The position numbers and the translations under genes are program-made. From sequence record PV340851.1: a DNA stretch of 64,000 nt. One strand, written 5' to 3'. Shown here one piece after another: positions 223-64,000 of the stretch. Within the stretch, counting starts at the first letter, position 1. Each line of letters opens with the position of its first letter. The notes under the pieces were generated by a model, which searched no databases, had not been told where the DNA came from, and saw only the letters and a list, made by a program, of their open reading frames with translations.

Positions 223-557
223 GCGACTTCTTCAAATCAGAAATGGTCCGAGGTGACCTACAAGAAATGTCAGAATTGCAGCAGTTTTGCATGCGATCTA
301 TGATGTCATTCCCTGTACTATCCAAGGAGAAACAGATCCAATACTTTGATGTACTCAATAAATTAATTGAGAAGCAGAAAGTATTTTACATGCGCCTCAC
401 GCTATCGGATGATCCCGAAGCAAAAGACATGGTAAGATCTATGAAGGAGTCGGTCGTTCTCCTGGGCGGTGAACCCAGAGAGGATATTCTAGAGATGTTT
501 GACGAACTCATTGTCAAAGTCGAAAAGATGAGGCAGCAAGCTCAGCAACAGGGTTGA
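219..557 (+). CDS. Conserved cyanophage/cyanobacterial protein, DUF1825-like
   Basis: Helical 112-aa protein (FFKSEMV...KQKVFYMRLTLSDDPEA) in the usual position between gp33 and gp32; recognised from memory. Confidence 0.55.
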   Translation: MSDFFKSEMVRGDLQEMSELQQFCMRSMMSFPVLSKEKQIQYFDVLNKLIEKQKVFYMRLTLSDDPEAKDMVRSMKESVVLLGGEPREDILEMFDELIVKVEKMRQQAQQQG

Positions 558-564
558 TCAGCAA

Positions 565-607
565 ACTGGCACATGGGTTGACGCTCCTGCTGCCACCCTG
601 TTATAAT
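565..607 (+). promoter_or_regulatory. Sigma70-like promoter for gp32 with an upstream ACTGGCACA half-operator
   Basis: TTGACG at 578-583, 18-nt spacer, TATAAT at 602-607; ACTGGCACA at 565-573. Confidence 0.7.
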
Positions 608-695
608 AACTTCGTTGGCAGGACGGGACTGGGAGACTGGTTCGCACCGTAAGACCAACTAATAAACCATAACTAACAAATCCGAGGTAACTATC

Positions 696-52715: not shown

Positions 52716-53296
52716 AACCAGTAGCATGGTGGAAAGGAGATGAAGATGACTGGTATATTAATTGGTTGTTGGAATACTTCTATACAATAAAAGAACAAGA
52801 TCCTGAGGGTAATAGTTTCTCGGTGAGGAATGGATGGCAACTACATGATCTTCATCTTGATAAGTATGGTCACGATAAGCAGATTAAATTCTTACATGAG
52901 TTTCTGCTTAATAAATTCATGGCATATTTGAAAGCATTTGAACCTACCATCACATACTATGCTACTCTCAACAGTTTATTTGTAAATATACTACCGCCAG
53001 GTGGATATAACGTCACACACAATCATCCTGGTTGTCAGTTTAGTGGAGTATTCTATCTTCAAGGTGGTGAAAACTGTGGCAATCTCACTGTGTTTAATCC
53101 CATGGCAATATCATCACTGGGACAAAACTTCTCTGGGTTTCCTAAGATACAACCAACAATGATATTCCCACCTGAACCAAACAGGGGAGTGTTCTTCAGT
53201 AATAATCTATTACACAATGTTGATGTCAATAGATCTGATCATGATCGTGTGTCACTAGCATTTAACATTAGAATCAACGACTTCAAACCCAGTTAG
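52694..53296 (+). CDS. Putative 2OG-Fe(II) oxygenase (TIGR02466-like)
   Basis: VNILPPGGYNVTHNHPGCQFSGVFYL, FFSNNLLHNV...RVSLAFNI. Confidence 0.82.
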   Translation: MEIRTFVEPVAWWKGDEDDWYINWLLEYFYTIKEQDPEGNSFSVRNGWQLHDLHLDKYGHDKQIKFLHEFLLNKFMAYLKAFEPTITYYATLNSLFVNILPPGGYNVTHNHPGCQFSGVFYLQGGENCGNLTVFNPMAISSLGQNFSGFPKIQPTMIFPPEPNRGVFFSNNLLHNVDVNRSDHDRVSLAFNIRINDFKPS

Positions 53297-53342
53297 CGAA
53301 CTGGCACACTCTCTTGCTTTGGCCGCGGCGACCTGTTATACT
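53289..53342 (+). promoter_or_regulatory. Early promoter with palindromic upstream operator
   Basis: CCAGT-TAGCGA-ACTGG(CACA) at 53289-53308, TTGCTT at 53314, 17-nt spacer, TATACT at 53337. Confidence 0.75.
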
Positions 53343-53366
53343 ATATGCATCAACACAAGACACCGC

Positions 53367-54608
53367 ATGCAACTTCGCCCCCATCAGCAACGCGCTCTGG
53401 ATGCTATGGCAACTGCTGATAAGGGTCAAGTCATCGTGCCTACGGGCGGCGGCAAGACTCTCATCGCTATCAAAGATGCCGTGAGGCGCTTTGATTCCGC
53501 AACCACTCCGCAGACTATTGTGGTTGTTGCTCCTCGCATCATGCTTGCTACTCAACTGAGTGCAGAATATCTTGAGCATATCAACAATGCTAACGTGCTG
53601 CACGTCCACAGTGGTGAGACTACACACTTTAGCACAACTAAGTCTGATCGTATCAACCTGTTCATTCGCATGTGTCATCATGTAGGTGAGCATGTTATTA
53701 TCTTCACCACTTATCATTCACTCGGTCGTATTGTAGATGCTGGTATCGACATTGACACTGTATATTTTGATGAGGCGCACAATGCTGTTCGCCGTGACTT
53801 CTTTGTCGCTGTTGCTGGTGCTAGTCTTACTGCAAAAGCAGCATATTTCTTTACTGCCACACCTAAGCACACTCGTCGCACAAACCGTGGCATGAACAAC
53901 GGTGAGATCTATGGTCCTGTGCTTGAGAATGTTCCTGCTCCTGAACTGGTAGCAGGTGGCAGCATTCTTCCTCCCACTGTTGTCCCTTACGAGATCGACA
54001 TCACCCGTGAGAAGGGTGCTGCTGCTTCCACAAGCGATCGTATCATGCTGCTGGACATCGTAGACAGCATGCCTGAGGACATGCCTGGTAAGATCCTTGT
54101 CGCTGCTCCTGCTAGCAAGATTATGGGTGCTCTGCTGTTCAAGACTAGCATTCTCCACGATCTGCGTGAGCGTGGTTATGATGTTCTGCACATTACTAGC
54201 AAGTATGGTGCATTTGTCAATGACAACAAAGTTAACCGTGAGCAGTTCTTTGACACTTTCGATGCCTGGGGCAAAGATCCTAACAAGAAGTTTATCATCT
54301 TCCACTACAGCATCCTGTCTGAAGGTATCAACGTGCATGGTCTGACTCACACTGTCATGCTTCGCAACCTAGATATTATCGAGATGGCACAGACTATCGG
54401 TCGTGTCATTCGTATGAACAAGGAAGACGCTGCTGATATTGCGTCTGGCAAACTTAATCCTGGTGAGGTACAGTTCTACCGTAAATCTACTGGTTACGTG
54501 ACTGTGCCTGTATTCAAGAACTATGGTGCCCAAACTATCAAGCGACTGCAACGCATTGTTGACACTATCTTTGTTGATGGTCAACCTGCCACGTCGCTGG
54601 TCATCTGA
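53367..54608 (+). CDS. Superfamily II (DEAD/H-like, ResIII-type) helicase
   Basis: LRPHQQ (Q motif), PTGGGKT (Walker A), FDEAH, FTATP, LSEGINV, QTIGRVIR; start refined to ATG 53367. Confidence 0.92.
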   Translation: MQLRPHQQRALDAMATADKGQVIVPTGGGKTLIAIKDAVRRFDSATTPQTIVVVAPRIMLATQLSAEYLEHINNANVLHVHSGETTHFSTTKSDRINLFIRMCHHVGEHVIIFTTYHSLGRIVDAGIDIDTVYFDEAHNAVRRDFFVAVAGASLTAKAAYFFTATPKHTRRTNRGMNNGEIYGPVLENVPAPELVAGGSILPPTVVPYEIDITREKGAAASTSDRIMLLDIVDSMPEDMPGKILVAAPASKIMGALLFKTSILHDLRERGYDVLHITSKYGAFVNDNKVNREQFFDTFDAWGKDPNKKFIIFHYSILSEGINVHGLTHTVMLRNLDIIEMAQTIGRVIRMNKEDAADIASGKLNPGEVQFYRKSTGYVTVPVFKNYGAQTIKRLQRIVDTIFVDGQPATSLVI

Positions 54609-54679
54609 TCTTAAGATTCTTTTCTTATTTCAAATTACCATTTCCTGATAAACTAACTAACATAGCACTGGAGGCACCT

Positions 54680-54877
54680 ATGGATGAATCTCAAATGACA
54701 CCCAAGCAACTCAAACGCAAGGATGCATTCTTCATTTTTTATGAAAGCGTACTGAAACCTGATACTGATCTGAGACAGTATGCACACGCTGAAGAATGTT
54801 TCCATGAGTTGATGGAATGGCGTCAGGAGATCATTACCTACCTAGACGAGCGTAGAAACCAAGAGTTCTGCAATTGA
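54680..54877 (+). CDS. Conserved cyanophage hypothetical protein
   Basis: RBS GGAGG; FFIFYESVLKPD..LRQYAH motif. Confidence 0.75.
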   Translation: MDESQMTPKQLKRKDAFFIFYESVLKPDTDLRQYAHAEECFHELMEWRQEIITYLDERRNQEFCN

Positions 54878-54945
54878 TAGGGTAAACCACCCAAACTATA
54901 TTACACACGCCTTCTAGGCGATTCTAGACCTATCTCAGAAAGATT

Positions 54946-55251
54946 ATGACTATCGAAGGACGACCAGAGTTTCAACATGACTGGCAAGCAGAGTATGCCA
55001 AGCAACGTAAAGATCGCATGCAAGATGCTATCGATGATTACCTCCAAGATGAGAAAGTCGCACCACGACAAACTTATGAAGAGATGCTATCTTGCATCGA
55101 TGATGTGATTAACTATCATAAATCTAACATGGATCGTGCTGTAGAACTCAAATCGCTCATGATGGGTCATCGTCAGTTTGACTTCACAGATGATATTGAA
55201 AATGAGATTGCTACAAAATGGCAGTATGACAAACTCCCTGCCAGATATTAA
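54946..55251 (+). CDS. Hypothetical protein
   Basis: ORF track; coupled to the next gene. Confidence 0.7.
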   Translation: MTIEGRPEFQHDWQAEYAKQRKDRMQDAIDDYLQDEKVAPRQTYEEMLSCIDDVINYHKSNMDRAVELKSLMMGHRQFDFTDDIENEIATKWQYDKLPARY

Positions 55252-55853
55252 TGAATAAAATACTGACGGACCAGCACTACATTGTCATCCCACAGTTTAT
55301 TCCAGCGACGAGAGCACTCGCACTACATGAAGAATTCGTTCGCTGTGCTAAACATTTCAGATGGGTAGGTGACACATTAGTGCGTAAGTCCGCATCAGTA
55401 TATAACTATCTTCCTGCATTGGAGATGTTATGTGACAGTACACAAACTGTCTCTTCGATCGTTGAATTGCCCTTGCTTCCTACCTATGCCTATGGTAGAC
55501 TTTACAAGTCAGGCAGTTCACTCAAACGACATACTGACCGTGAGTGCTGTGAATTCAGCGTCACGTTACATCTCAATGGAGACCAACCCTGGGACATCAA
55601 CATTCTCACACAACATGGTCCTAAAGGGTTGCATCTCTCTCCTGGTGATGCTATGATCTACACAGGTTGCATCGCCCCACACTGGAGAACAGAGTACACT
55701 GGTGAGTCCTACTCACAGTTCTTTCTTCACTATGTTCACAGTCGTGGACTACATGCCTACCGATTTTTTGATAAATCTAATACAGATTTGTCAGGAGATC
55801 AACGTCAAGTTAACAACTTCATCAACTATGTGGACAGTCACCAAGGAGATTAA
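55251..55853 (+). CDS. Putative 2OG-Fe(II) oxygenase
   Basis: PTYAYGRLY...LKRHTDRECCEFSVTLHL, PGDAMIYTG...HWR...QFFLHY. Confidence 0.75.
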   Translation: MNKILTDQHYIVIPQFIPATRALALHEEFVRCAKHFRWVGDTLVRKSASVYNYLPALEMLCDSTQTVSSIVELPLLPTYAYGRLYKSGSSLKRHTDRECCEFSVTLHLNGDQPWDINILTQHGPKGLHLSPGDAMIYTGCIAPHWRTEYTGESYSQFFLHYVHSRGLHAYRFFDKSNTDLSGDQRQVNNFINYVDSHQGD

Positions 55854-56079
55854 ATGGATCAAGAATGCTCTCAAGAAAGATTATCTTTATGATACTGATG
55901 AGATCATCCGCCTGAAGCGACGTTTGAGAGACTTACGTGTCCTCAAGCGTGACATGAATAAAGGTTATGGGTTCGGCAACGGTGATGTTCCTGTCATCGA
56001 TATGACCCAAACTTCAATGCAAAAGCAGGCAGACGAAGCAGTTGAAACTATAGAAACTATAGATAGAAACGTATTGTGA
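55828..56079 (+). CDS. Hypothetical protein
   Basis: Start refined to ATG 55828 (MWTVTKEIKWIKNALKKDYLY). Confidence 0.65.
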   Translation: MWTVTKEIKWIKNALKKDYLYDTDEIIRLKRRLRDLRVLKRDMNKGYGFGNGDVPVIDMTQTSMQKQADEAVETIETIDRNVL

Positions 56080-56264
56080 GTATTTCCACCATGGCATACA
56101 ACCAACAAGCAAACGACGCTTTGACTGATGAAGTCAAAAGTCTGGTAAAAGATTTGCAAGAACGCAATCACCAGTTGTTTGAGAAGATCGAAGAATTAGA
56201 AGATCTAGTTTTAGAACTCAAGAGAGAACTCGATGACTCACACAACAAATTCTACGACGTTTGA
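56076..56264 (+). CDS. Small coiled-coil hypothetical protein
   Basis: Heptad pattern LVKDLQERNHQLFEKIEELEDLV. Confidence 0.6.
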   Translation: MSISTMAYNQQANDALTDEVKSLVKDLQERNHQLFEKIEELEDLVLELKRELDDSHNKFYDV

Positions 56265-56556
56265 GTTACTTCAACCAGTAGAATATAAAGGAACTACTGG
56301 TTACATTTCTTTCATTAGTGAATTCTACCTCACTATTTGCTTTTTAGACATCCCATTGCCAGAGTCAGCAAACTCACGATGGGGTCGTCATTATGCTAAC
56401 CTCATTGTCTATCCTCATTTTTATCATGAAATACGCAGTCGTGTGGACGAAGAACAAGAAGAAGGGCACATCGCGCCAACAAGCAATATTTTTCAATATC
56501 GAAGACGCCATACTGTGGGAACAACACATCAACAAGACGGAACACGCAAAGACTGA
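56233..56556 (+). CDS. Hypothetical protein
   Basis: ORF track; globular-looking N-terminal two-thirds. Confidence 0.6.
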   Translation: MTHTTNSTTFELLQPVEYKGTTGYISFISEFYLTICFLDIPLPESANSRWGRHYANLIVYPHFYHEIRSRVDEEQEEGHIAPTSNIFQYRRRHTVGTTHQQDGTRKD

Positions 56557-56581
56557 ACTTCAACCCATCTTCACCAACTGA
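56426..56581 (+). CDS. Small hypothetical protein (MKYAVVWTKNKKK...)
   Basis: ATG 56426; overlaps the previous ORF in another frame. Confidence 0.5.
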   Translation: MKYAVVWTKNKKKGTSRQQAIFFNIEDAILWEQHINKTEHAKTELQPIFTN

Positions 56582-56588
56582 TTACATC

Positions 56589-56723
56589 ATGATTAATTAC
56601 GATTTCTCCGATCCTGCTGAACTTCTTGAGCAAGACCGTGTAAATATTCTACGTGAGGCAGGTGAACTCCCTGCTGAACAAATTGTAGAACATATTCCTG
56701 AGGAATGGTTTGATGAATTCTGA
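56589..56723 (+). CDS. Small acidic hypothetical protein (44 aa), absent from the ORF track
   Basis: MINYDFSDPAELLEQDRVNILREAGELPAEQIVEHIPEEWFDEF fills the gap between neighbours. Confidence 0.55.
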   Translation: MINYDFSDPAELLEQDRVNILREAGELPAEQIVEHIPEEWFDEF

Positions 56724-56913
56724 TGAAGTAGCACGAACTGTCACTGAGTTGACAATTGACACACAAGAAATTAAATTCCTAATTGACTGCATGTGGGGTC
56801 AATCCCGACATGATTCACAAGCACTTGCCTTCAGACATAACATTAACGATGTTGATCTTGAGGGCAGATTGCAGAAAGCATTAGGTGACGCCCTATTTGA
56901 ACTAAATCAATGA
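56710..56913 (+). CDS. Hypothetical protein
   Basis: ORF track; its stop overlaps the next start (ATGA). Confidence 0.6.
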   Translation: MMNSDEVARTVTELTIDTQEIKFLIDCMWGQSRHDSQALAFRHNINDVDLEGRLQKALGDALFELNQ

Positions 56914-57590
56914 AACATCTGCTAACTGCAATCCTTGCAGCATCATCTTTTGGCATGGCATCAGTTGCCCTTGCTAATGAAGACAAAATCACCAAAGGTT
57001 TCTATAGCATGGATGCTATGGGATGTATGTTGGTGCGTGAGTGTACCAAAGACGTTGAGGAAGTATATTCTCTCCTTGATGTATCATCACAGTATGATGA
57101 ACCAGAACGCTACACATTTGTGGCGCAAGAGTTCAATAATATGCTCACGTCACTGAATCAAATTGGTGTCAAAGTATTCCTTGCTGATGAGCGTTACTTC
57201 CCAACTTCACACCGTGGAGTATATCATACTGTCGGTAACAATTTCTTCTTGAACAAGAGATATATGGACAGTCCTTCAGCACTAATGAGTGTGATGAGGC
57301 ATGAGGGATGGCATGCTGCACAAGATTGCATGGCAGGTACTATCAAGAATAGTTTGATTGCTATTATTAAACCAGAAGACTCTGTGCCGATGCTGTGGCG
57401 TGTCATGGCAGAGCGCACATACCCTGCTTCAGCGGTCCCCTGGGAGGCAGAGGCGACCTGGGCAGGCAAGACTGAAGGAATGACGCAGAAGGCGCTTGCA
57501 GCGTGTGCTAGAGGGCGCATGTGGGAGCATTATCCACCAACACCACTCACTCGTAAGTTTTTGGTCAATGAAGGATACATTAAAGATTGA
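56910..57590 (+). CDS. Exported putative zinc metalloprotease (HExxH)
   Basis: Signal peptide; VMRHEGWHAAQDC with downstream WEAEA (third ligand Glu). Confidence 0.65.
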   Translation: MKHLLTAILAASSFGMASVALANEDKITKGFYSMDAMGCMLVRECTKDVEEVYSLLDVSSQYDEPERYTFVAQEFNNMLTSLNQIGVKVFLADERYFPTSHRGVYHTVGNNFFLNKRYMDSPSALMSVMRHEGWHAAQDCMAGTIKNSLIAIIKPEDSVPMLWRVMAERTYPASAVPWEAEATWAGKTEGMTQKALAACARGRMWEHYPPTPLTRKFLVNEGYIKD

Positions 57591-57879
57591 ACAATACGAT
57601 GACAAAGAAGACCTCTTCATCACAATCCCGCCCCACATCCTCCAGCAACTCAAATGGGAAGAAGGTACAGAAGTCGAGTGGAAAATCGAAGGGGACAGTA
57701 TCATCGTCCAAGACACAAAAAAGTCTAGAGAAGAATCTTCAGACTCTATCATCATCGCAGAAGGCACAGAAGAAGACTGGTACGACTTCTGGTACAACAG
57801 CGAAAGCGAAGGCAAAGAGTACAAAGAAACCCTCGGTCAAGTCTTCCACTCGCCAGAAGGTCAAGGATCCTGGCATTAA
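57568..57879 (+). CDS. AbrB/MazE-like DNA-binding protein with an acidic tail
   Basis: DLFITIPPHILQQLKWEEGTEVEWKIEGDSIIV matches the swapped-hairpin AbrB pattern. Confidence 0.6.
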   Translation: MKDTLKIEQYDDKEDLFITIPPHILQQLKWEEGTEVEWKIEGDSIIVQDTKKSREESSDSIIIAEGTEEDWYDFWYNSESEGKEYKETLGQVFHSPEGQGSWH

Positions 57880-58057
57880 ATATACTAGATCGAAAGATTT
57901 GAAACTATTTCCATTCGTTGGTACATTTCCATGGCGTCTTGAAGACAGAAAGGAGAAGAAAACGTGCTGGTTTCAATGCTTCGATCACGCAGAGAAATAT
58001 ATCTTGCGTTATAGTCTAACCAAAGTACAGTATAAACTACAGGAAGCAATAGTATGA
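57587..58057 (+). CDS. Basic Ser/Thr/Lys-rich protein with a conserved cyanophage C-terminus
   Basis: C-terminal LFPFVGTFPWRLEDRKEKKTCWFQCFDHAEKYILRY; start uncertain; overlaps the AbrB-like ORF. Confidence 0.5.
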   Translation: MNNTMTKKTSSSQSRPTSSSNSNGKKVQKSSGKSKGTVSSSKTQKSLEKNLQTLSSSQKAQKKTGTTSGTTAKAKAKSTKKPSVKSSTRQKVKDPGIKYTRSKDLKLFPFVGTFPWRLEDRKEKKTCWFQCFDHAEKYILRYSLTKVQYKLQEAIV

Positions 58058-58197
58058 CTACAAGACAATTCGTAGATAGTAAAGGTAATACATGGGAATG
58101 GGATGAAACGCCTGAAGTTCTTGATGCATTGAAAGTTCTACATGACACTGAGCGTAAGCATGCAGAGTCTGGTGGTGATTTCGGAGTTGGCAAGTAA
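58054..58197 (+). CDS. Small hypothetical protein (47 aa), absent from the ORF track
   Basis: MTTRQFVDSKGNTWEWDETPEV...; coupled start; followed by a terminator. Confidence 0.6.
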   Translation: MTTRQFVDSKGNTWEWDETPEVLDALKVLHDTERKHAESGGDFGVGK

Positions 58198-58204
58198 CCT
58201 TGGG

Positions 58205-58259
58205 ACAGTTCTCCTAGTGTCCACCAGCGCCCCCACAGGGCGCTTTTTAATGCCATACT
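58205..58259 (+). promoter_or_regulatory. Operator + stem-loop + -10 cassette
   Basis: ACAGT-TCTCCT-AGTGT(CCAC), then hairpin AGCGCCC-CCACA-GGGCGCT-TTTT (58226-58248), then CATACT at 58254. Confidence 0.65.
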
Positions 58260-58285
58260 ATGTTCATACCAATCAAGGGCAGCAC

Positions 58286-58528
58286 ATGCGACTCCTGACC
58301 TCCGCCACACAGATCGATTTCTATCCTGTTGGCACTGGCAAGCGTTTTGTCAAGCGTGTCATCTGGCATCCTGATGCTGAAGTCTCCCAACAAATGACTT
58401 CTTTCACCACCCGTGTCAAGACTGATGCAATCTATGACATGAACCAATACATTGCTAATGGTGCTGAGGTGATTGATTACAACACTGAAGCATACACTGG
58501 TAGTGACTACTCCCCTGTCTATTGCTGA
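58286..58528 (+). CDS. Early hypothetical protein
   Basis: Start refined to ATG 58286 (MRLLTSATQIDFYPVG). Confidence 0.65.
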   Translation: MRLLTSATQIDFYPVGTGKRFVKRVIWHPDAEVSQQMTSFTTRVKTDAIYDMNQYIANGAEVIDYNTEAYTGSDYSPVYC

Positions 58529-58614
58529 TGGACGTTACTAACCTCTCATTACTAGCAACAGGACTACTCACTGTTGCTGGCATTATTCTATTCTTCAAGG
58601 CAGTTTATCGATGA
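58528..58614 (+). CDS. Small membrane peptide (28 aa)
   Basis: MDVTNLSLLATGLLTVAGIILFFKAVYR; coupled on both sides. Confidence 0.5.
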   Translation: MDVTNLSLLATGLLTVAGIILFFKAVYR

Positions 58615-58739
58615 ATCCTGACACTTACACATTTGCAGGCGATGCAGTTACAGTCCTCGGTTTGGTTGGTGTCATTAGCACTGCCATTATTATTGTCACT
58701 GCTTTCACTCGCTACTACAATTCTCCTCTCCGTAAATGA
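58611..58739 (+). CDS. Small membrane protein (42 aa)
   Basis: MNPDTYTFAGDAVTVLGLVGVISTAIIIVTAFTRYYNSPLRK; one TM helix; ATGA overlap. Confidence 0.6.
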   Translation: MNPDTYTFAGDAVTVLGLVGVISTAIIIVTAFTRYYNSPLRK

Positions 58740-58742
58740 TCA

Positions 58743-58907
58743 ATGATGACCAAAGCACAAATTCTTAAGGTCATCAAGACAACAGCAGTTCCTCACGTAC
58801 TCACCCGTGAGGAAAAGTTTCAAGTCTTCGTCAATGTGTGTGATAACATGTTGCACGAAGGTCGCATCACTCTCAAACAACACGATCGCTGGACTAATGT
58901 TTTCTAA
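58743..58907 (+). CDS. Small hypothetical protein (54 aa)
   Basis: MMTKAQILKVIK...FVNVCDNMLHEGRIT..QHDRWTNVF. Confidence 0.65.
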   Translation: MMTKAQILKVIKTTAVPHVLTREEKFQVFVNVCDNMLHEGRITLKQHDRWTNVF

Positions 58908-59079
58908 AGACGACACTGATTTCATTGATTTTCTCTTCGGTAAGTTGACCTGTCTCACTGACATGGATGATCTGAATGAAGATGATGACACAGCAGGCAG
59001 CATGGCACTGGAGATCGAGGCTGCTCGCCTTGAGATGACAGTTGACGAACTGGTCCAACACATCCACGGATGCCCCTGA
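58897..59079 (+). CDS. Small acidic hypothetical protein
   Basis: Start refined to ATG 58897. Confidence 0.6.
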   Translation: MFSKDDTDFIDFLFGKLTCLTDMDDLNEDDDTAGSMALEIEAARLEMTVDELVQHIHGCP

Positions 59080-59104
59080 TCCAGCCTATACTAAGTTCAT
59101 CAAC
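59038..59104 (+). promoter_or_regulatory. Early promoter with palindromic operator
   Basis: ACAGT-TGACGA-ACTGG at 59038-59053; TATACT at 59087-59092. Confidence 0.7.
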
Positions 59105-59120
59105 CAAGGGAGAGACACCC

Positions 59121-59372
59121 ATGACCACCACCATCGTCAAGCACTCCTACTACAAGATCGAGATCGACACCATCGATGCTCCGCAGCACCCCATCGTGTA
59201 TTTCCGCAAGTGCGGCAAGTGTACCACTGCCAAGGGCATGGATCGTCAGCACAACCGCGTTGTGAACGAGACTGTAGAGGCATGGCGTCAGTTTGAGGGT
59301 CAGATCCGTCGCTACACCATCTCCCGTGTGCCAGCTGACGTAGTGGTCGGCGGTGAGATCCGCACTGCCTGA
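59121..59372 (+). CDS. Early hypothetical protein
   Basis: Start refined to ATG 59121 after RBS GGGAG. Confidence 0.7.
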   Translation: MTTTIVKHSYYKIEIDTIDAPQHPIVYFRKCGKCTTAKGMDRQHNRVVNETVEAWRQFEGQIRRYTISRVPADVVVGGEIRTA

Positions 59373-59397
59373 TCACTGCTATACTAAGTTCATCAAC
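59331..59397 (+). promoter_or_regulatory. Early promoter with palindromic operator
   Basis: CCAGC-TGACGT-AGTGG at 59331-59346; TATACT at 59380-59385. Confidence 0.7.
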
Positions 59398-59407
59398 ACA
59401 ACAGGAC

Positions 59408-59860
59408 ATGACCACTTCCTTCGCTGACTTCGTTGCCACACAAGATGCTCGCAACGACATCCAACTAAAGGTGAGAGAGTATGCACTGATGCTCTGTGAC
59501 GCACTGGAGCAAGATTTCAAGACCGATAGCATCCGTCGCGCTAATTTCTTCAACAATACTGATCCTGAGTACAAAGAAAAGCGTCTCCAGTCTATTGAGA
59601 GTGGTGATTGTCTCTACAAATTCTACATTGAGAGTGGTCGTAAGTATCACAAGATCATCATGGAGACTGATGGTGGCAGTCGCTCTGTTCATTGCTTCAT
59701 TAACATGAAGACTGGTGAGTTGCATAAGGCAGCAAGTTTCAAGGCACCAGTAAAAGAACCACGTTTCAACATGCTTATTATCACCGAGCGTGAGTGGGTG
59801 CTCAAGAACTGCGACTGGAGTGGCGGTTATCTCTACAAAAATGCATACTACCAGGGTTGA
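59408..59860 (+). CDS. Conserved T4-like early hypothetical protein
   Basis: GRKYHKIIM...SVHCFINMKTGELHKAASFKAP motif. Confidence 0.75.
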   Translation: MTTSFADFVATQDARNDIQLKVREYALMLCDALEQDFKTDSIRRANFFNNTDPEYKEKRLQSIESGDCLYKFYIESGRKYHKIIMETDGGSRSVHCFINMKTGELHKAASFKAPVKEPRFNMLIITEREWVLKNCDWSGGYLYKNAYYQG

Positions 59861-59885
59861 CACCCTGCCCCATACATAGTATACT
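59857..59885 (+). promoter_or_regulatory. Consensus sigma70 promoter
   Basis: TTGACA at 59857-59862, 17-nt spacer, TATACT at 59880-59885. Confidence 0.85.
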
Positions 59886-59907
59886 ATCTTCAGACACCAT
59901 TCTTCCA

Positions 59908-60138
59908 ATGTACGTTCCGCTCTTCTATCTTGTTGCTGGTGGTAATGCGTATGCTCTAGATGAGGATAACATGCCATTCGGTGCTCCTGTTCGTATGGAT
60001 GCAACCATTGATTGGGATGCTGCTTATGACTTCGATCCTGATCAAGAAGACATTGAGTTTGTTGCTCACATGATCAAATACGTGCAAGACTCTAAAAAAC
60101 TGCACGAAGAACAATTCAACGAGGTATTCTACAAATGA
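59908..60138 (+). CDS. Early hypothetical protein
   Basis: Start refined to ATG 59908, downstream of the promoter. Confidence 0.65.
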   Translation: MYVPLFYLVAGGNAYALDEDNMPFGAPVRMDATIDWDAAYDFDPDQEDIEFVAHMIKYVQDSKKLHEEQFNEVFYK

Positions 60139-60353
60139 ACATCATTTCTGATCATGTCAAAGAACTAGTACAGTTCACATCATTGAGTGAGAATCGCCTT
60201 CGTCCTATCTCTAATGGACTGGACAACGACAAATACTGGCGCTACTTCAACAAATTTCCCAATGAGTTTGCCAAAGGACTACAATTAGCATTGCATCCTG
60301 AGCAAACCTTTGTAGAATACGATCACCTCTCCAACGTTCTTACTATCAAATGA
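60135..60353 (+). CDS. Hypothetical protein
   Basis: Coupled ORF (ATGA overlaps). Confidence 0.65.
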   Translation: MNIISDHVKELVQFTSLSENRLRPISNGLDNDKYWRYFNKFPNEFAKGLQLALHPEQTFVEYDHLSNVLTIK

Positions 60354-60565
60354 ACCAGCAACAACGTGAACAAGAGTCAGTCTGCCGTCAGATTGATCAA
60401 ATCATGAAGAATCGCCTTCGTCGCTTCAAATTTCTGATGAAGAAAGGTGAAATCGATGATGCACTTGCTATTGCAGATGAGTTCTTTGAATGGATGAACT
60501 TGGATGATCAGTCTGATGATGATGCAATTCATTACTTTAACTTGAATGACCTCAACAACTTGTGA
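60350..60565 (+). CDS. Hypothetical protein
   Basis: Coupled ORF. Confidence 0.65.
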   Translation: MNQQQREQESVCRQIDQIMKNRLRRFKFLMKKGEIDDALAIADEFFEWMNLDDQSDDDAIHYFNLNDLNNL

Positions 60566-61163
60566 TCCTGCTGTTTACGTAGATACAAATCTACCCGAGG
60601 GTATGCTGGATTATATTATCCAGACCCTCGATAATCTACAGATCCCACAAAACGCACAACCAACACAGATTAGAAGGAACGGTGAATGGGTCAATGATAA
60701 TGATCTAAGAAAGGCAGAAGCAAAAGCAGTGCATGCTACCTGCTGGATTAGTGGTATGATCTGGCATTATATCATGAGGACTAATCATTACCAATGGGGT
60801 TATGATATCACATCCTTTGATAATGACCAGATCGAGTACATACAATATGAAAAGGGTGGACATTACAAATGGCATCATGATGATCTAATGCCACAAACCC
60901 ACCCAATTATCCCAGAAGTATACGGTCAACAACCTCACTACACTGAATACAATCGTAAAATATCTTTCTCACTAACTCTAAACGATGACTACGAAGGAGG
61001 AGATCTAGAACTATTATGGAAACCAAATTCGCTCTTTAGAATACCAAAGAAGAAAGGACATCTAATTATCTTTGACTCTAGATGTAACCATAGAGTGACA
61101 CCAGTTAAACAAGGCATGAGAAAAGTTCTTGTAGGTTGGGTAGTAGGTCCACGATGGAAATAA
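60546..61163 (+). CDS. 2OG-Fe(II) oxygenase (prolyl-4-hydroxylase-like)
   Basis: YKWHHD, RKISFSLTLNDDYEGGDL, IIFDSRCNHRVTPVKQGMRKVLVGW. Confidence 0.9.
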   Translation: MTSTTCDPAVYVDTNLPEGMLDYIIQTLDNLQIPQNAQPTQIRRNGEWVNDNDLRKAEAKAVHATCWISGMIWHYIMRTNHYQWGYDITSFDNDQIEYIQYEKGGHYKWHHDDLMPQTHPIIPEVYGQQPHYTEYNRKISFSLTLNDDYEGGDLELLWKPNSLFRIPKKKGHLIIFDSRCNHRVTPVKQGMRKVLVGWVVGPRWK

Positions 61164-61753
61164 CTAAACTATTCCCCTCCCCCCTCTATACTAACAACAT
61201 AGACATAACAGATGATTTCTCTAATCTACTGTTCCAACAACATATCAACGGACATACATCCAAATCATTAAACGTACTAAAACTATTCCCTGACACAAGA
61301 CAAAAGATTGAATCACACATCAATACTTTTGTACAACAACTAGGATACAAGACAAAGTGCAAGGTAACTAACTCATGGGTCAATAAACATTACAAAGGAG
61401 ATCACGCCCAACCACACTATCATGCTAATGCTTTACTATCTGGAGTGGTATTTCTATACACACCACCTAATAGTGGTATCTTTAAACTAATAAGACCATC
61501 TCCTACATCACATAGTATATTCTCCACAGTCTTTCAATTAGATAGAAACGAAGACCAACAACATACAGAATATACTGCTGATCATTATGCAATACAACCA
61601 ATAACAAATACTATCATTATCTTCCCATCTACCCTCATACATCAAGTCTCTCCATCAGAAACAACAGAAGCAAGATATACACTCGCATTTGATGTTTTAC
61701 CTGCAGAAGATGTACTATGCGGAACTATGTCATACTATGCCACTCCACAGTGA
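61154..61753 (+). CDS. Putative 2OG-Fe(II) oxygenase (TIGR02466-like)
   Basis: SWVNKH...HAQPHYHANALLSGVVFL, IIFPSTLIHQV...RYTLAF. Confidence 0.82.
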   Translation: MEITKLFPSPLYTNNIDITDDFSNLLFQQHINGHTSKSLNVLKLFPDTRQKIESHINTFVQQLGYKTKCKVTNSWVNKHYKGDHAQPHYHANALLSGVVFLYTPPNSGIFKLIRPSPTSHSIFSTVFQLDRNEDQQHTEYTADHYAIQPITNTIIIFPSTLIHQVSPSETTEARYTLAFDVLPAEDVLCGTMSYYATPQ

Positions 61754-61798
61754 TTGCAATTGATTCTCAATAATAATACGTTGAAGTTTCTTAACACC

Positions 61799-61831
61799 TG
61801 TGGAAAACATTGTGGAAAAACCTGTGGAAAA
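61799..61831 (-). repeat. Three perfect TTTTCCACA repeats (cyanobacterial DnaA-box consensus) at a 12-bp period; candidate origin
   Basis: TGTGGAAAA on + at 61799-61807, 61811-61819 and 61823-61831, in an ORF-free region. Confidence 0.7.
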
Positions 61832-61874
61832 AGAAATGGTAATAAAAACATAGGTAAGGTGCGGTGGAGTTGTT

Positions 61875-61970
61875 GTCTTAGCGCACCACGCAACGACTGT
61901 CAATGCCCTCTGTGACACCCCAGAAAGTGGCACAAACCCCTCGGAGATACCCAGAGTCCTGCAGTATAAT
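61875..61970. promoter_or_regulatory. Divergent promoter pair sharing a central palindromic operator
   Basis: Minus strand: TTGACA (61903-61898), 17-nt spacer, TAAGAC (61880-61875). Operator: TGTGACAC-CCCAGAAA-GTGGCACA at 61911-61934. Plus strand: TATAAT at 61965-61970. Confidence 0.6.
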
Positions 61971-62026
61971 ACAGAGGTCTTCAGGGTCATTTCTGAGACT
62001 TTCCAAAAAAACAGAAAACTAAGAAA

Positions 62027-62095
62027 TCTGAAAAACTCAAAAAGTCAAAAAACTTAAATTTTAAAGATTTTGAGTTTTTCAGAAATTTAAGTTTT
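62027..62095. repeat. Interlocking AT-rich inverted repeats
   Basis: TCTGAAAAACTCAAAA (62027-42) / TTTTGAGTTTTTCAGA (62068-83), 16 bp perfect; AAAACTTAAATTT (62049-61) / AAATTTAAGTTTT (62083-95), 13 bp perfect. Confidence 0.85.
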
Positions 62096-62117
62096 AAACT
62101 TTAACCATTTTTTACAA

Positions 62118-62363
62118 ATGTTTGATTTTACAGATCAATTTGAGTCTTCTAATATTAGAAGAATTGTAGTTGGTAGAGAAGATGAGAATGTAGTTGAAAT
62201 TATGTTTAAATCTTCAAAAATGAAGTATAATTATCAAATAAAAGAAGAAAATTGGGTTAATTCTTTGCAAACAGTGATTGATAGTAAAGAATCAGTCGGA
62301 AAGTTTGTTAATTCTTCTATTAGAGAAGATAAACTAGAATTAATCAGTAAATTCTTGGTATAA
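62118..62363 (+). CDS. KTSC-like domain protein
   Basis: ESSNIRRI...VEIMFKS...Y.Y...SVGKFVN pattern. Confidence 0.55.
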   Translation: MFDFTDQFESSNIRRIVVGREDENVVEIMFKSSKMKYNYQIKEENWVNSLQTVIDSKESVGKFVNSSIREDKLELISKFLV

Positions 62364-62412
62364 TCACTAAATAATGAATGTAATTCACAATTTAGTCTAA
62401 TTAATCGTAATA

Positions 62413-62559
62413 ATGTCTAGATCTCCATCATCAAAATCAACGAAGTACAATGTTGATGACTACGAAGACTTCGGTTATGAAGTAAAGAACGCCAAACGTT
62501 ACAGCAACAAACAGAAGCAGCAACGTAAGTTCAAAGATTACTATCACGAAGAGGATTGA
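62413..62559 (+). CDS. Small hypothetical protein (48 aa), absent from the ORF track
   Basis: MSRSPSSKSTKYNVDDYEDFGYEVKNAKRY...; late core CTAAATA at 62367-62373. Confidence 0.6.
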   Translation: MSRSPSSKSTKYNVDDYEDFGYEVKNAKRYSNKQKQQRKFKDYYHEED

Positions 62560-62745
62560 CAACTAAATATGTGACACTAGTTGAACTGTCACACAATATT
62601 ACCAAAGAGAGGGTGATCGTGTATTGTATACATGGTTGCCCTTTTTTATTGCACACGACTGAACCTTACTTACCCAGTGGAGTTGAGTATACTTCTGGGG
62701 TTAACTTTTGGCGTTTCGTTATTAAGAATGTTTTGGCTGCCTCAA

Positions 62746-62802
62746 CCAGTTGGCAAAGTGGCACAGTGACCCCAGCGAATCGCCAAACCCCATGCTTATA
62801 AT
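62746..62802 (+). promoter_or_regulatory. Early promoter with palindromic operator
   Basis: CCAGT-TGGCAA-AGTGG(CACA) ending at 62765; TATAAT at 62797-62802. Confidence 0.7.
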
Positions 62803-62808
62803 AGGTGC

Positions 62809-62994
62809 ATGAAAACAAAACGACTTCTCTCCTCTCCCCAGACCCTGCAGGACCTGCAGGATTTCATGTTTGACTCCATGCTACCCGCTGAGATGTGCGT
62901 CGATTGGTTTTGCGATCGTTTCAACGTGTCTGCCACGGATGACGTGATAGACTACGTGATCGATGCCCATTTCGGCATGTTCGCAGACCAGTGA
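62809..62994 (+). CDS. Small early hypothetical protein
   Basis: RBS AGGT; directly follows a promoter. Confidence 0.7.
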   Translation: MKTKRLLSSPQTLQDLQDFMFDSMLPAEMCVDWFCDRFNVSATDDVIDYVIDAHFGMFADQ

Positions 62995-63071
62995 GACAAG
63001 TGGCACAGCATCTGTTGATCTGTGCCCCATCTCATGTATTGTATACACATCAACCAAATTCATTCAATTTC

Positions 63072-63398
63072 ATGCGTAAGATCGAACGACTGATGAACTC
63101 TGCCATCAAAGAGTCACGGGACTGGAAGAATGCCAACACTCGCGTTGAGAACATCGACGACGTGTCTGTTGTATACCTGCACGGCAACAAAATTGCTGAG
63201 ATTGGTGACAACTTTGTTCGTGTATTTGATGGCGGTTGGCAGTCTAACACCACTAAGAGTCGTCTCAATGCCATTATCAATGAGTTCTGCGATCCTTACA
63301 CTGATGGTGTCTATCAGCACAAGTTTGAGTGGTTCATCACTGATAACAAGTTCATCAAAAAGTTTGTCAATGGTTACGAATTCGTGGGTGCTGTTTGA
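63072..63398 (+). CDS. Conserved early hypothetical protein
   Basis: MRKIERLMNSAI...VYLHGNKIAEI...GGWQSNTTKSRLNA; start refined to ATG 63072; operator CCAGT-GAGACA-AGTGG at 62988-63003. Confidence 0.75.
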   Translation: MRKIERLMNSAIKESRDWKNANTRVENIDDVSVVYLHGNKIAEIGDNFVRVFDGGWQSNTTKSRLNAIINEFCDPYTDGVYQHKFEWFITDNKFIKKFVNGYEFVGAV

Positions 63399-63667
63399 TG
63401 TCTGACCCCTGCACAATCGCTCTTCAAACTGACAAACAACTCATGGCAATTCACAACAAAGATCTAGAAGGACTCATCGAAAACTATGCATGGCATATTA
63501 TTGATGGGTTAGATCATAAGTCTGCTGATCAAATGTTGTTTGATTTGTTGACTCGTGAATATGAAAAGATGACGTGGGATGAGGTTACTGATGAGGTTGT
63601 AGATCTCTACGGGGAGGATACATTAATTGACCTGTTGCCAGACGCCACAGAAGACCAGTCTGCCTAG
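63398..63667 (+). CDS. Early hypothetical protein
   Basis: Coupled ATG 63398. Confidence 0.65.
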   Translation: MSDPCTIALQTDKQLMAIHNKDLEGLIENYAWHIIDGLDHKSADQMLFDLLTREYEKMTWDEVTDEVVDLYGEDTLIDLLPDATEDQSA

Positions 63668-63717
63668 TGGCACACTCTGCCCCTCACTCTGCCCCATCCT
63701 GTGCCTATAATAAGGAC

Positions 63718-63948
63718 ATGAACAATCAACCACGCTTCGCCATCCAACCCGCTGCCTGGGGTAAGTTCGATGAGCATGGGGCAGACTACTGCATCAGCAT
63801 CGCCCACGCTTATAAGATCGCCCAGGGCACCACAGAGGACATGATGATTTTTCGACTCACCACAGGCAACCCCATCGCATGGGTGAGGGTCTATGCTGAC
63901 GAGAGCATCGACGCTGTGACGGATGAGCATCTGGCACTGCTGGACTGA
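63718..63948 (+). CDS. Early hypothetical protein
   Basis: Start refined to ATG 63718 after operator (63655-63674), TATAAT (63706) and RBS AAGGA. Confidence 0.7.
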   Translation: MNNQPRFAIQPAAWGKFDEHGADYCISIAHAYKIAQGTTEDMMIFRLTTGNPIAWVRVYADESIDAVTDEHLALLD

Positions 63949-63974
63949 CTTCTCACTGCATCATCCTCTATAAT
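63931..63974 (+). promoter_or_regulatory. Early promoter for the next gene (ATG 63981, runs off the window)
   Basis: CTGGCACT at 63931 and TATAAT at 63969-63974. Confidence 0.55.
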
Positions 63975-64000
63975 AAGCACATGACAAACAAAGCAATGAA

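Follow-up and report, generated by a model that had tools for sequence, protein, structure and literature searches.

The genome of Synechococcus phage Sf-CH3 (PV340851.1, 200,096 bp), a T4-like cyanomyovirus with Synechococcus WH8102 as its isolation host and the sponge Petrosia ficiformis as its source, carries a repeated 24-bp near-palindrome, TGTGNCASTT-N4-AASTGNCACA (S denotes C or G), at a fixed distance upstream of −10 boxes. The same sequence with the same spacing is conserved across phages, and, judging from these sequence comparisons, the element is reasonably likely to mark the early promoter class of the T4-like cyanophages (Kyanoviridae), via the predicted binding of a protein. The window considered here comprises bases 1–64000 of Sf-CH3; the motif was judged on the whole genome, beyond this 64-kb window.

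The original prediction placed a palindromic operator of 16 nt, with 5-nt half-sites and a constant 6-nt spacer, in front of about ten early promoters. The corresponding loose regular expression, scanned on both strands, has 25 matches in the window, compared with 4.4 ± 2.6 in 200 shuffles. When it is combined with the −10 pattern of the original prediction at a distance of 37–40 nt, 10 composite sites are found, all within 53–64 kb, whereas the shuffles contain 0.085 such sites for the window and none for the 53–64 kb region. Nine full cores are found exactly where they had been placed (53289, 58205, 59038, 59331, 61915, 62574, 62746, 62988, and 63655), as are the half sites at 565 and 63931, and in all nine full copies the right half precedes a TAnnnT hexamer by 37–40 nt. 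Several cores (53289, 59038, 59331, 62988, 63655, and 63919) lie, according to the annotation and as had been noted before, in the 3′ end of the upstream coding sequence.

In the whole genome, the loose expression matches 28 times on the plus strand, nine of the matches clustering at 53.3–63.7 kb. Matches at 138000 and 140667 have TATAAT at 38–39 nt, with a terminator hairpin filling the spacer. A composite weight-matrix scan of Sf-CH3 added degenerate copies at 63919 and 64138, and a later genome scan yielded a probable copy at 173214 consisting of the proximal arm only. In total, Sf-CH3 has about 15 convincing copies, including the half sites at 550 and 173214, all of them on the coding strand; 11 are situated in 53.3–64.2 kb, among small hypothetical genes, and those beyond the window start, as 24-mers, at 64134, 137996, 140663, and probably 173214. 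The octamer AGTGGCAC, with one mismatch allowed, is not enriched in the window (56 occurrences vs. 51.7 expected), and hence the signal is the dyad together with its fixed spacing to the −10 box, rather than the octamer alone. A test for exact 4-mer dyads enriched in the early region relative to the rest of the genome missed the motif, since its palindromes are imperfect, and a loose regular expression for a −10 box plus CAT was too noisy for use. Rfam gave no family match in 52–64 kb.

The dyad of constant spacer is real, but the extent initially assigned to it was too short: the 16-mer is the core of a 24-bp element with two 10-bp arms. An exact-pattern scan of IMG/VR produced at least 120 loci with at least 164 matches, and these loci (1.02 Mb) formed the set for the site statistics; they contain at least 343 sites with no more than three mismatches over the 18 specified positions of the 24-mer. 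Shuffling of 40 of these loci left one site, compared with 112 in the real sequences. The consensus derived from 236 non-seed sites among the matches listed is TGTG-C/A-CA-S-TT-N4-AA-S-TG-G/T-CACA, and its distal arm, TGTG-C/A-CA-S-TT, was recovered independently from 303 non-seed sites picked on GGCACA and a −10 box. The proximal arm is better conserved than the distal one (128 and 72 mismatch-free arms, respectively, among the same 236 sites of the matches listed), which explains the half sites of the original prediction. The site at 565 does qualify as such a half site, yet it too has a −10 box at 37 nt and, in addition, a good −35 box, TTGACG. Collagen-like fibre genes (loci L071, L077, L034, L093, and L118) contain Gly/Thr/Ser-rich coding repeats, GGT-ACC-AGT-GGC-ACA, with many exact half-site matches, and these are false positives in any motif scan.

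The position of the element relative to the promoter is constant. Among the IMG/VR matches listed, TAnnnT peaks sharply 29–30 nt after the last base of the 24-mer; nearly every exact match listed has its −10 box at the same distance, and most are preceded by GTG. The spacing is the same in cassettes with plain DNA in the spacer and in those where a terminator hairpin occupies it (58201, 137996, 140663). We took the base 7 nt after the −10 hexamer as the predicted start, and all positions of the element are counted from it; in the matches listed, 87% of sites have a purine here and 72% have T at the following base. With transcription starting at this purine, the element would span about −65 to −42, with the centre near −54 (about −53.5 or −54.5), and sit just upstream of the −35 position. 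The −10 boxes are of the sigma-70 type and strong (a mean of 5.1 out of 6 for related sites among the matches listed), and the −35 boxes are often poor, as had been claimed: 66% of the related sites have at most three out of six positions, and TTG at a spacing of 16–17 nt occurs in about 30%. At three loci, one palindrome has promoters 29–30 nt away on both sides (L104:2987, L110:5582, and L113:5310), with −10 boxes TTATGT or TTATAT on one side and TATCTT on the other, as expected for a symmetric binder; here, two divergent predicted early promoters have a single element in common.

An inverted repeat beside a promoter could also act as an RNA or DNA stem-loop, i.e., it could terminate or attenuate transcription of the gene before it or be a hairpin for processing or stability, in the manner of the promoter-early stem-loop (PeSL) cassettes known from the phage pairs RB49/phi1, T4/PST, and KVP40/nt-1 (Arbiol et al., 2010, PMC2839356; Comeau et al., 2014, PMC4122927). 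One PeSL subclass likewise has its inverted repeat directly in front of an early promoter within a gene-variable region, and the consensus has the potential for a stem of 10 bp closed by a 4-nt loop. However, when the Sf-CH3 dyads are folded as RNA, the energies lie between −3.3 and −9.9 kcal/mol (z-scores from +0.4 to −1.95), no better than shuffles, and at several sites the dyad stem does not form at all. The dyad has no T-run behind it, and separate, genuine terminator hairpins lie downstream of it in three cassettes only. The two S positions are anti-complementary and do not covary (128 non-complementary vs. 83 complementary pairs, odds ratio 0.38, in the 236 non-seed sites among the matches listed), and the base sequence is kept across phages with unrelated flanks. 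Weak hairpins, the lack of a T-run, non-covarying S positions, a conserved sequence amid unrelated flanks, and promoters on both sides together favour a symmetric DNA-binding protein, and we consider a stem-loop function highly improbable. The dimeric-protein part of the original prediction agrees with a sequence conserved in preference to pairing, while the CRP/NtcA geometry suggested along with it does not fit, given the consensus, the 24-bp length, and the centre near −54.

Similar to PeSLs, the Sf-CH3 cassette is a repeated composite of a promoter, putatively early and of the sigma-70 type, and an adjacent inverted repeat, and the copies are clustered between small ORFan genes in gene-variable (hyperplastic) regions, where homology to relatives tends to end. 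At the same time, PeSL stem-loops are G/C-run terminator hairpins whose sequence varies between phage pairs (PMC2839356, PMC4122927), whereas the Sf-CH3 repeat is one specific sequence across genera, folds weakly, and has no T-run. PeSL promoters have a near-consensus −35 box and an AT-rich upstream region, and in Sf-CH3 the repeat takes the place of the latter. Hence, the Sf-CH3 cassette is PeSL-like in architecture but fails the defining feature, the terminator hairpin; the PeSL papers leave cyanophages untreated (PMC2839356, PMC4122927).

The element is conserved in front of the DNA helicase gene. The orthologues of SfCH3_43 in 27 viral contigs and in Syn9 all have the arms, the −10 box, and CATCAAC upstream, while their spacers and upstream flanks show no relationship. 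One of the 27 contigs (196,280 bp) has the length of S-PM2. Sf-CH11, Syn1, Sf-CH1b, S-CAM3, and Syn9 have five to nine copies each in the gene-variable early region; in Syn9, the element precedes gp55, gp63, gp68, gp73, gp75, gp78, and gp79, which presumably form the early cluster, and its copies lie at 43.1, 44.8, 46.3, 47.2, 48.6, 49.1, 51.0, 51.2, and 53.0 kb.

Since the same element precedes Syn9 early-region genes, the suggestion of the original prediction that the motif had already been described for cyanomyophage early promoters is very probably right. The 2016 study by Doron and colleagues is said to report a novel regulatory element that controls early-gene transcription in Syn9 and P-TIM40; that element is reportedly abundant and conserved among T4-like cyanophages and in metagenomes. 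Both elements belong to T4-like cyanophages and lie upstream of small early-region genes, and the abundance and conservation reported for the former are also seen here, in the IMG/VR loci, the 27 helicase loci, and the five relatives. The 24-bp symmetry, the 29–30 nt spacing, the two-sided use, and the asymmetry of the arms were measured in this study and not taken from that one. The sequence of the Syn9 early motif is not printed in the literature searched, citing papers included, and the only motifs mentioned by Sullivan 2010 and the Clokie/Mann review are sigma-70-like, NtcA, Pho, and late ones.

The original prediction also suggested that the repeats could mediate cassette shuffling. Taken further, this would make them mainly homology patches for recombination, their conservation reflecting the spread of mobile cassettes and not the binding of a regulator. 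Ends of blastn homology between Sf-CH3 (52–67 kb) and Sf-CH11, Syn1, Sf-CH1b, S-CAM3, and Syn9 fall in cassettes or within 20 nt of them in 28 of 110 cases, compared with 11.2 expected (p = 4e-6); gene starts that have a cassette collect 3.0 homology ends each and those lacking one 1.3 (about 2.3 times), and metagenomic relatives diverge at 63010–63012, just past the element at 62984–63007. This enrichment is consistent with cassette shuffling, but the breakpoint test is confounded by gene boundaries and by the kinship of the relatives, which are mutually non-independent. Moreover, the spacer is not conserved while the distance from the element to the −10 box is, which points to selection on geometry and not to a copied block, and a repeat with a regulatory role could give rise to shuffling as a side effect, as proposed for PeSLs. 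Taking all this into account, we assign only a very small probability to recombination as the main role of the repeats.

A strict-palindrome scan of 185,579 species genomes returned 63 loci, about the number expected by chance, most of them generic hairpins or terminators. Two exceptions have the right −10 spacing. In Cyanobium sp. CH-040 (L168:2042–2063), a perfect palindrome, followed at 29 nt by TAAATT, has a tRNA-like region on one side and the gene of a tyrosine recombinase (integrase) on the other, at the edge of a probable genomic island. In a metagenome-assembled genome (MAG) of Trichormus sp. (L176:4621–4642), a perfect copy with TATAGT 29 nt downstream precedes an open reading frame (ORF) of 101 codons near a phage tail-component-like gene, in what is probably a prophage of a filamentous cyanobacterium with the same promoter architecture. 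Typical cyanophage early cassettes were also seen on four phage-like contigs (L177, L192, L201, and L212) from bins labeled as Nanopelagicaceae, Clavibacter, “uncultured cyanobacterium,” and Flavobacteriales MAGs; these contigs are probably cyanophage DNA mis-binned into MAGs.

We propose that a sequence-specific, two-fold symmetric protein, host-encoded or virion-delivered and already present at DNA entry, would bind the element at about −65 to −42 and help the host RNA polymerase holoenzyme to start at the purine 7 nt after the −10 box. In this way, the element may drive the helicase gene as well as the small genes located in the gene-variable early region, and probably also the gp32 gene. 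What the sequences show directly is the element with its constant spacing, its orientation and placement, and its presence across phages; protein binding and activation are inferred, and the early timing of the promoters is predicted from positional homology with Syn9 and from what the 2016 study reportedly found.

Alternatively, the host RNA polymerase might itself contact the element, either with its alpha C-terminal domains or by way of a particular sigma factor, which would make the element a factor-free, phage-specific counterpart of UP elements. The interval from −65 to −42 is exactly the UP-element zone, the better conserved arm is the promoter-proximal one, and half sites with the proximal arm only exist (550, 63915). 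On the other hand, the known UP elements of E. coli are A/T-rich and not palindromic, while the Sf-CH3 element is G+C-rich, two-fold symmetric, and able to serve both sides. In addition, the hosts would be expected to use such an element, and in the strict-palindrome scan their chromosomes are essentially without copies of consensus quality. For these reasons, direct recognition by the polymerase seems to us quite unlikely.

With the element regarded as a predicted protein site, several known sites were compared with it. Like the sites of the CRP/FNR family, it is two-fold symmetric and located upstream of −10-dependent promoters with a weak −35 box, and its inner arms, CAsTT-N4-AAsTG, share the 5-N4-5 geometry of the FNR box. 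It differs from TGTGA-N6-TCACA of CRP, TTGAT-N4-ATCAA of FNR, and GTA-N8-TAC of NtcA in its consensus, its length of 24 bp, and its outer TGTG/CACA blocks. CRP, NtcA, FNR, CIRCE, LexA, sigma-54, and the DnaA box were all excluded on consensus or spacing. In the case of a CRP/FNR/NtcA-type site, the sequence departs from the family consensus and the centre is neither at −41.5 (class II) nor at −61.5 or further turns (class I). In the case of a sigma-54 promoter (TGGCAC-N5-TTGCW), the sites have no TTGC at N5, with TAnnnT about 30 nt later instead; cyanobacteria are not known to have sigma-54. With the DnaA box TTTTCCACA, the arms have in common only the NCACA end of AASTGNCACA.

The original prediction named the ORF at 57568 as a possible binder. 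This gene, SfCH3_53 (57568–57879), indeed encodes a MazE/AbrB-type (SpoVT-AbrB) domain (PF04014, E = 3.6e-8), with no obvious toxin partner annotated next to it. Its relatives were found in 31 phage records (tblastn, E ≤ 0.001), mostly from the ACG-2014 and S-CAM4 groups, and the element carriers Syn9, S-PM2, Syn1, and S-CAM3 are not among the 25 of these 31 records that were listed. We rejected it as a universal binder because of this narrow distribution; furthermore, the ORF is itself an early product and therefore cannot be needed for the first early transcription. Thus, the AbrB/MazE-like protein is an unlikely candidate.

Several observations weigh against an early-promoter element bound by an activating protein. 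The quality of the element shows no trade-off with the quality of the −35 box, contrary to a simple compensation model, and a centre near −54 is not a classical position for CRP-type activation. The T7-like cyanophages P-SSP7 and Syn5 (first 12 kb) have no copy, and picocyanobacterial chromosomes are essentially free of consensus-quality copies according to the strict-palindrome scan. The sole public RNA run with a part of the region (metatranscriptome contigs) shows no start sites.

The lack of compensation between the element and the −35 box would agree with an operator for an early phage-encoded repressor that shuts off the early class at the onset of middle transcription, the promoters themselves firing unaided with host sigma-A. 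All these promoters have a strong −10 box, and in about 30% a TTG stands at the correct distance for a −35 box, which could allow some of them to work without help; the element is cyanomyovirus-specific and rare in hosts, as expected of the target of a phage-encoded binder; and an early protein of the AbrB/MazE fold is present in Sf-CH3. But with its end at about −42, the site lies upstream of the core promoter and is thus badly placed for steric repression, and most −35 regions are weak. The AbrB/MazE-fold protein is the sole early protein seen with a DNA-binding fold, and its range is narrow, as described above; no conserved candidate repressor was identified. A repressor operator is accordingly an unlikely interpretation.

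For the activating factor that we favour, the rarity of the element in host chromosomes and its absence from the two cyanopodoviruses mean that an ordinary host regulator with its own regulon is not obvious. The same distribution leans towards a factor tied to the cyanomyovirus lineage, e.g., one delivered in the virion, with a host protein as the other option. A review cites Doron et al., among others, for the general point that capsid-packaged phage factors redirect the host polymerase to viral promoters.

The individual cassettes of the window are summarized in Table 1. The promoter at 550 has no distal arm. In the cassette at 58201, a GC-rich hairpin with a T-run, resembling an intrinsic terminator (about 58222–58250), separates the element from the −10 box, and further terminator-like hairpins occupy the same place at genome positions 138016–138043 and 140686–140712, where the spacing of 38–39 nt is kept; therefore, one short stretch may both end the upstream transcript and start the next one.

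Table 1. Predicted early-promoter cassettes and the DnaA-box cluster in the Sf-CH3 window; starts are predicted.
Feature	Coordinates	Strand	Element	Promoter boxes	Start	Context
Half-site promoter	550–614	+	Proximal arm AACTGGCACA, 564–573	−35 TTGACG; −10 TATAAT, 602–607	Near 614	Upstream of the single-stranded DNA-binding protein gene SfCH3_03 (696)
Early cassette	53285–53349	+	53285–53308, overlaps SfCH3_42 end	−10 TATACT, 53337–53342	53349, A of CATCAAC	Upstream of DNA helicase gene SfCH3_43
Early cassette	58201–58266	+	58201–58224	−10 CATACT/TACTAT, 58254–58261		Upstream of SfCH3_55
Early cassette	59034–59099	+	59034–59057, inside SfCH3_58 3′ end	−10 TATACT, 59087–59092	59099	Upstream of SfCH3_59
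Early cassette	59327–59392	+	59327–59350, inside SfCH3_59 3′ end	−10 TATACT, 59380–59385	59392	Upstream of SfCH3_60 (DUF7717)
Early cassette	61911–61977	+	61911–61934, 2 mismatches	−10 TATAAT, 61965–61970	Near 61977	In non-coding stretch 61754–62117
Early cassette	62570–62634	+	62570–62593, TGTGACACTA-gttg-AACTGTCACA, 1 mismatch, best palindrome of the window	−10 TATTGT, 62622–62627		Followed by 45-codon ORF 62632–62769, absent from GenBank annotation
Early cassette	62742–62809	+	62742–62765	−10 TATAAT, 62797–62802	62809, A of ATG	61-codon ORF 62809–62994, absent from GenBank annotation
Early cassette	62984–63049	+	62984–63007	−35-like TTGATC; −10 TATTGT, 63037–63042	63049	Upstream of SfCH3_68 (Kyano_Gp96 family)
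Early cassette	63651–63718	+	63651–63674, inside SfCH3_69 3′ end	−10 TATAAT, 63706–63711	63718, ATG of SfCH3_70	Predicted leaderless
Degenerate cassette (half site 63931)	63915–63981	+	63915–63938, 4 mismatches	−10 TATAAT, 63969–63974	63981, ATG of SfCH3_71	Predicted leaderless
Three exact TTTTCCACA nonamers	61799–61831	−				12 nt apart, about 80 nt upstream of cassette 61911

At 62809, 63718, and 63981, the A of the ATG is exactly 7 nt after the −10 hexamer, and the respective mRNAs are predicted to be leaderless. Among the matches listed, 25 of 334 related promoters have an ATG at exactly this gap, and there are almost none at neighbouring gaps; 22 of the 25 ATGs open an ORF of at least 30 codons. 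One recurrent predicted leaderless product begins with MKNTHLEHPED.

The cassette at 61911 is preceded by three copies of TTTTCCACA, the cyanobacteria-specific DnaA-box consensus, which are distinct from the element and form the only such cluster in the 200-kb genome. The boxes are followed by a conserved non-coding block, the cassette, and a leader of about 140 nt up to SfCH3_66 (62118), the last ~100 nt of which are about 80% A+T, so that the whole arrangement covers 61799–62117. Two to four such boxes, clustered close to an early promoter, are also found in Sf-CH11, Syn1, S-CAM3, Syn9 (at about 52.56 kb), and about ten IMG/VR contigs. The block at 61870–61905 with GTCTTAGC (complement GCTAAGAC) recurs between the DnaA boxes and the cassette in several phages (L009, L217, and L218; in reverse orientation in L049, L060, L126, and L220). 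The cumulative GC skew has a weak local minimum at 60–62 kb and is otherwise uninformative. Based on the boxes and their surroundings, this locus is a candidate phage replication origin that would use the host DnaA.

In T4, early promoters rely on sigma-70 and UP elements and are boosted by the virion-delivered ADP-ribosyltransferase Alt, while middle promoters have a MotA box at −30. As in T4, a phage-specific extra promoter element may set the temporal class here, and a virion-delivered factor would be one way to achieve this at time zero; unlike in T4, the element is not a UP element rich in A/T, and its place is not at −30. The genes alt, modA/B, motA, and asiA are missing from cyanomyoviruses (PMC2984593). 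The absence of these T4 proteins for early and middle reprogramming raises the question of how T4-like cyanophages, some of the most abundant marine viruses, take over the host polymerase at time zero. A defined 24-bp site with fixed geometry makes this early takeover directly testable, and with it annotators can flag early and leaderless genes as well as overlooked small ORFs in hundreds of cyanophage genomes and metagenomic contigs. As the element was probably described in 2016, the value of the present results lies in refinement and not in discovery: the symmetry, spacing, and breadth of the element are described, and a hairpin role and the AbrB-like candidate are excluded. In this respect, the DnaA-box cluster may be the fresher lead.

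A tentative extension of these results has two parts, namely, that the palindrome is the docking site of an early-promoter factor and that the cassette at 61911 together with the DnaA boxes is a replication origin. If the former is true, a protein delivered in the virion, or a cyanobacterial protein without its own regulon, would direct the host polymerase to every early promoter of the Kyanoviridae, a takeover route unlike the Alt/Mod/MotA/AsiA system of T4, and the copies in the Cyanobium integrase/tRNA island and the Trichormus prophage-like region would represent other mobile elements that heed the same signal. If the latter is true, the origin would join promoter-driven priming, as in oriF/oriG of T4, with the recruitment of the host DnaA.

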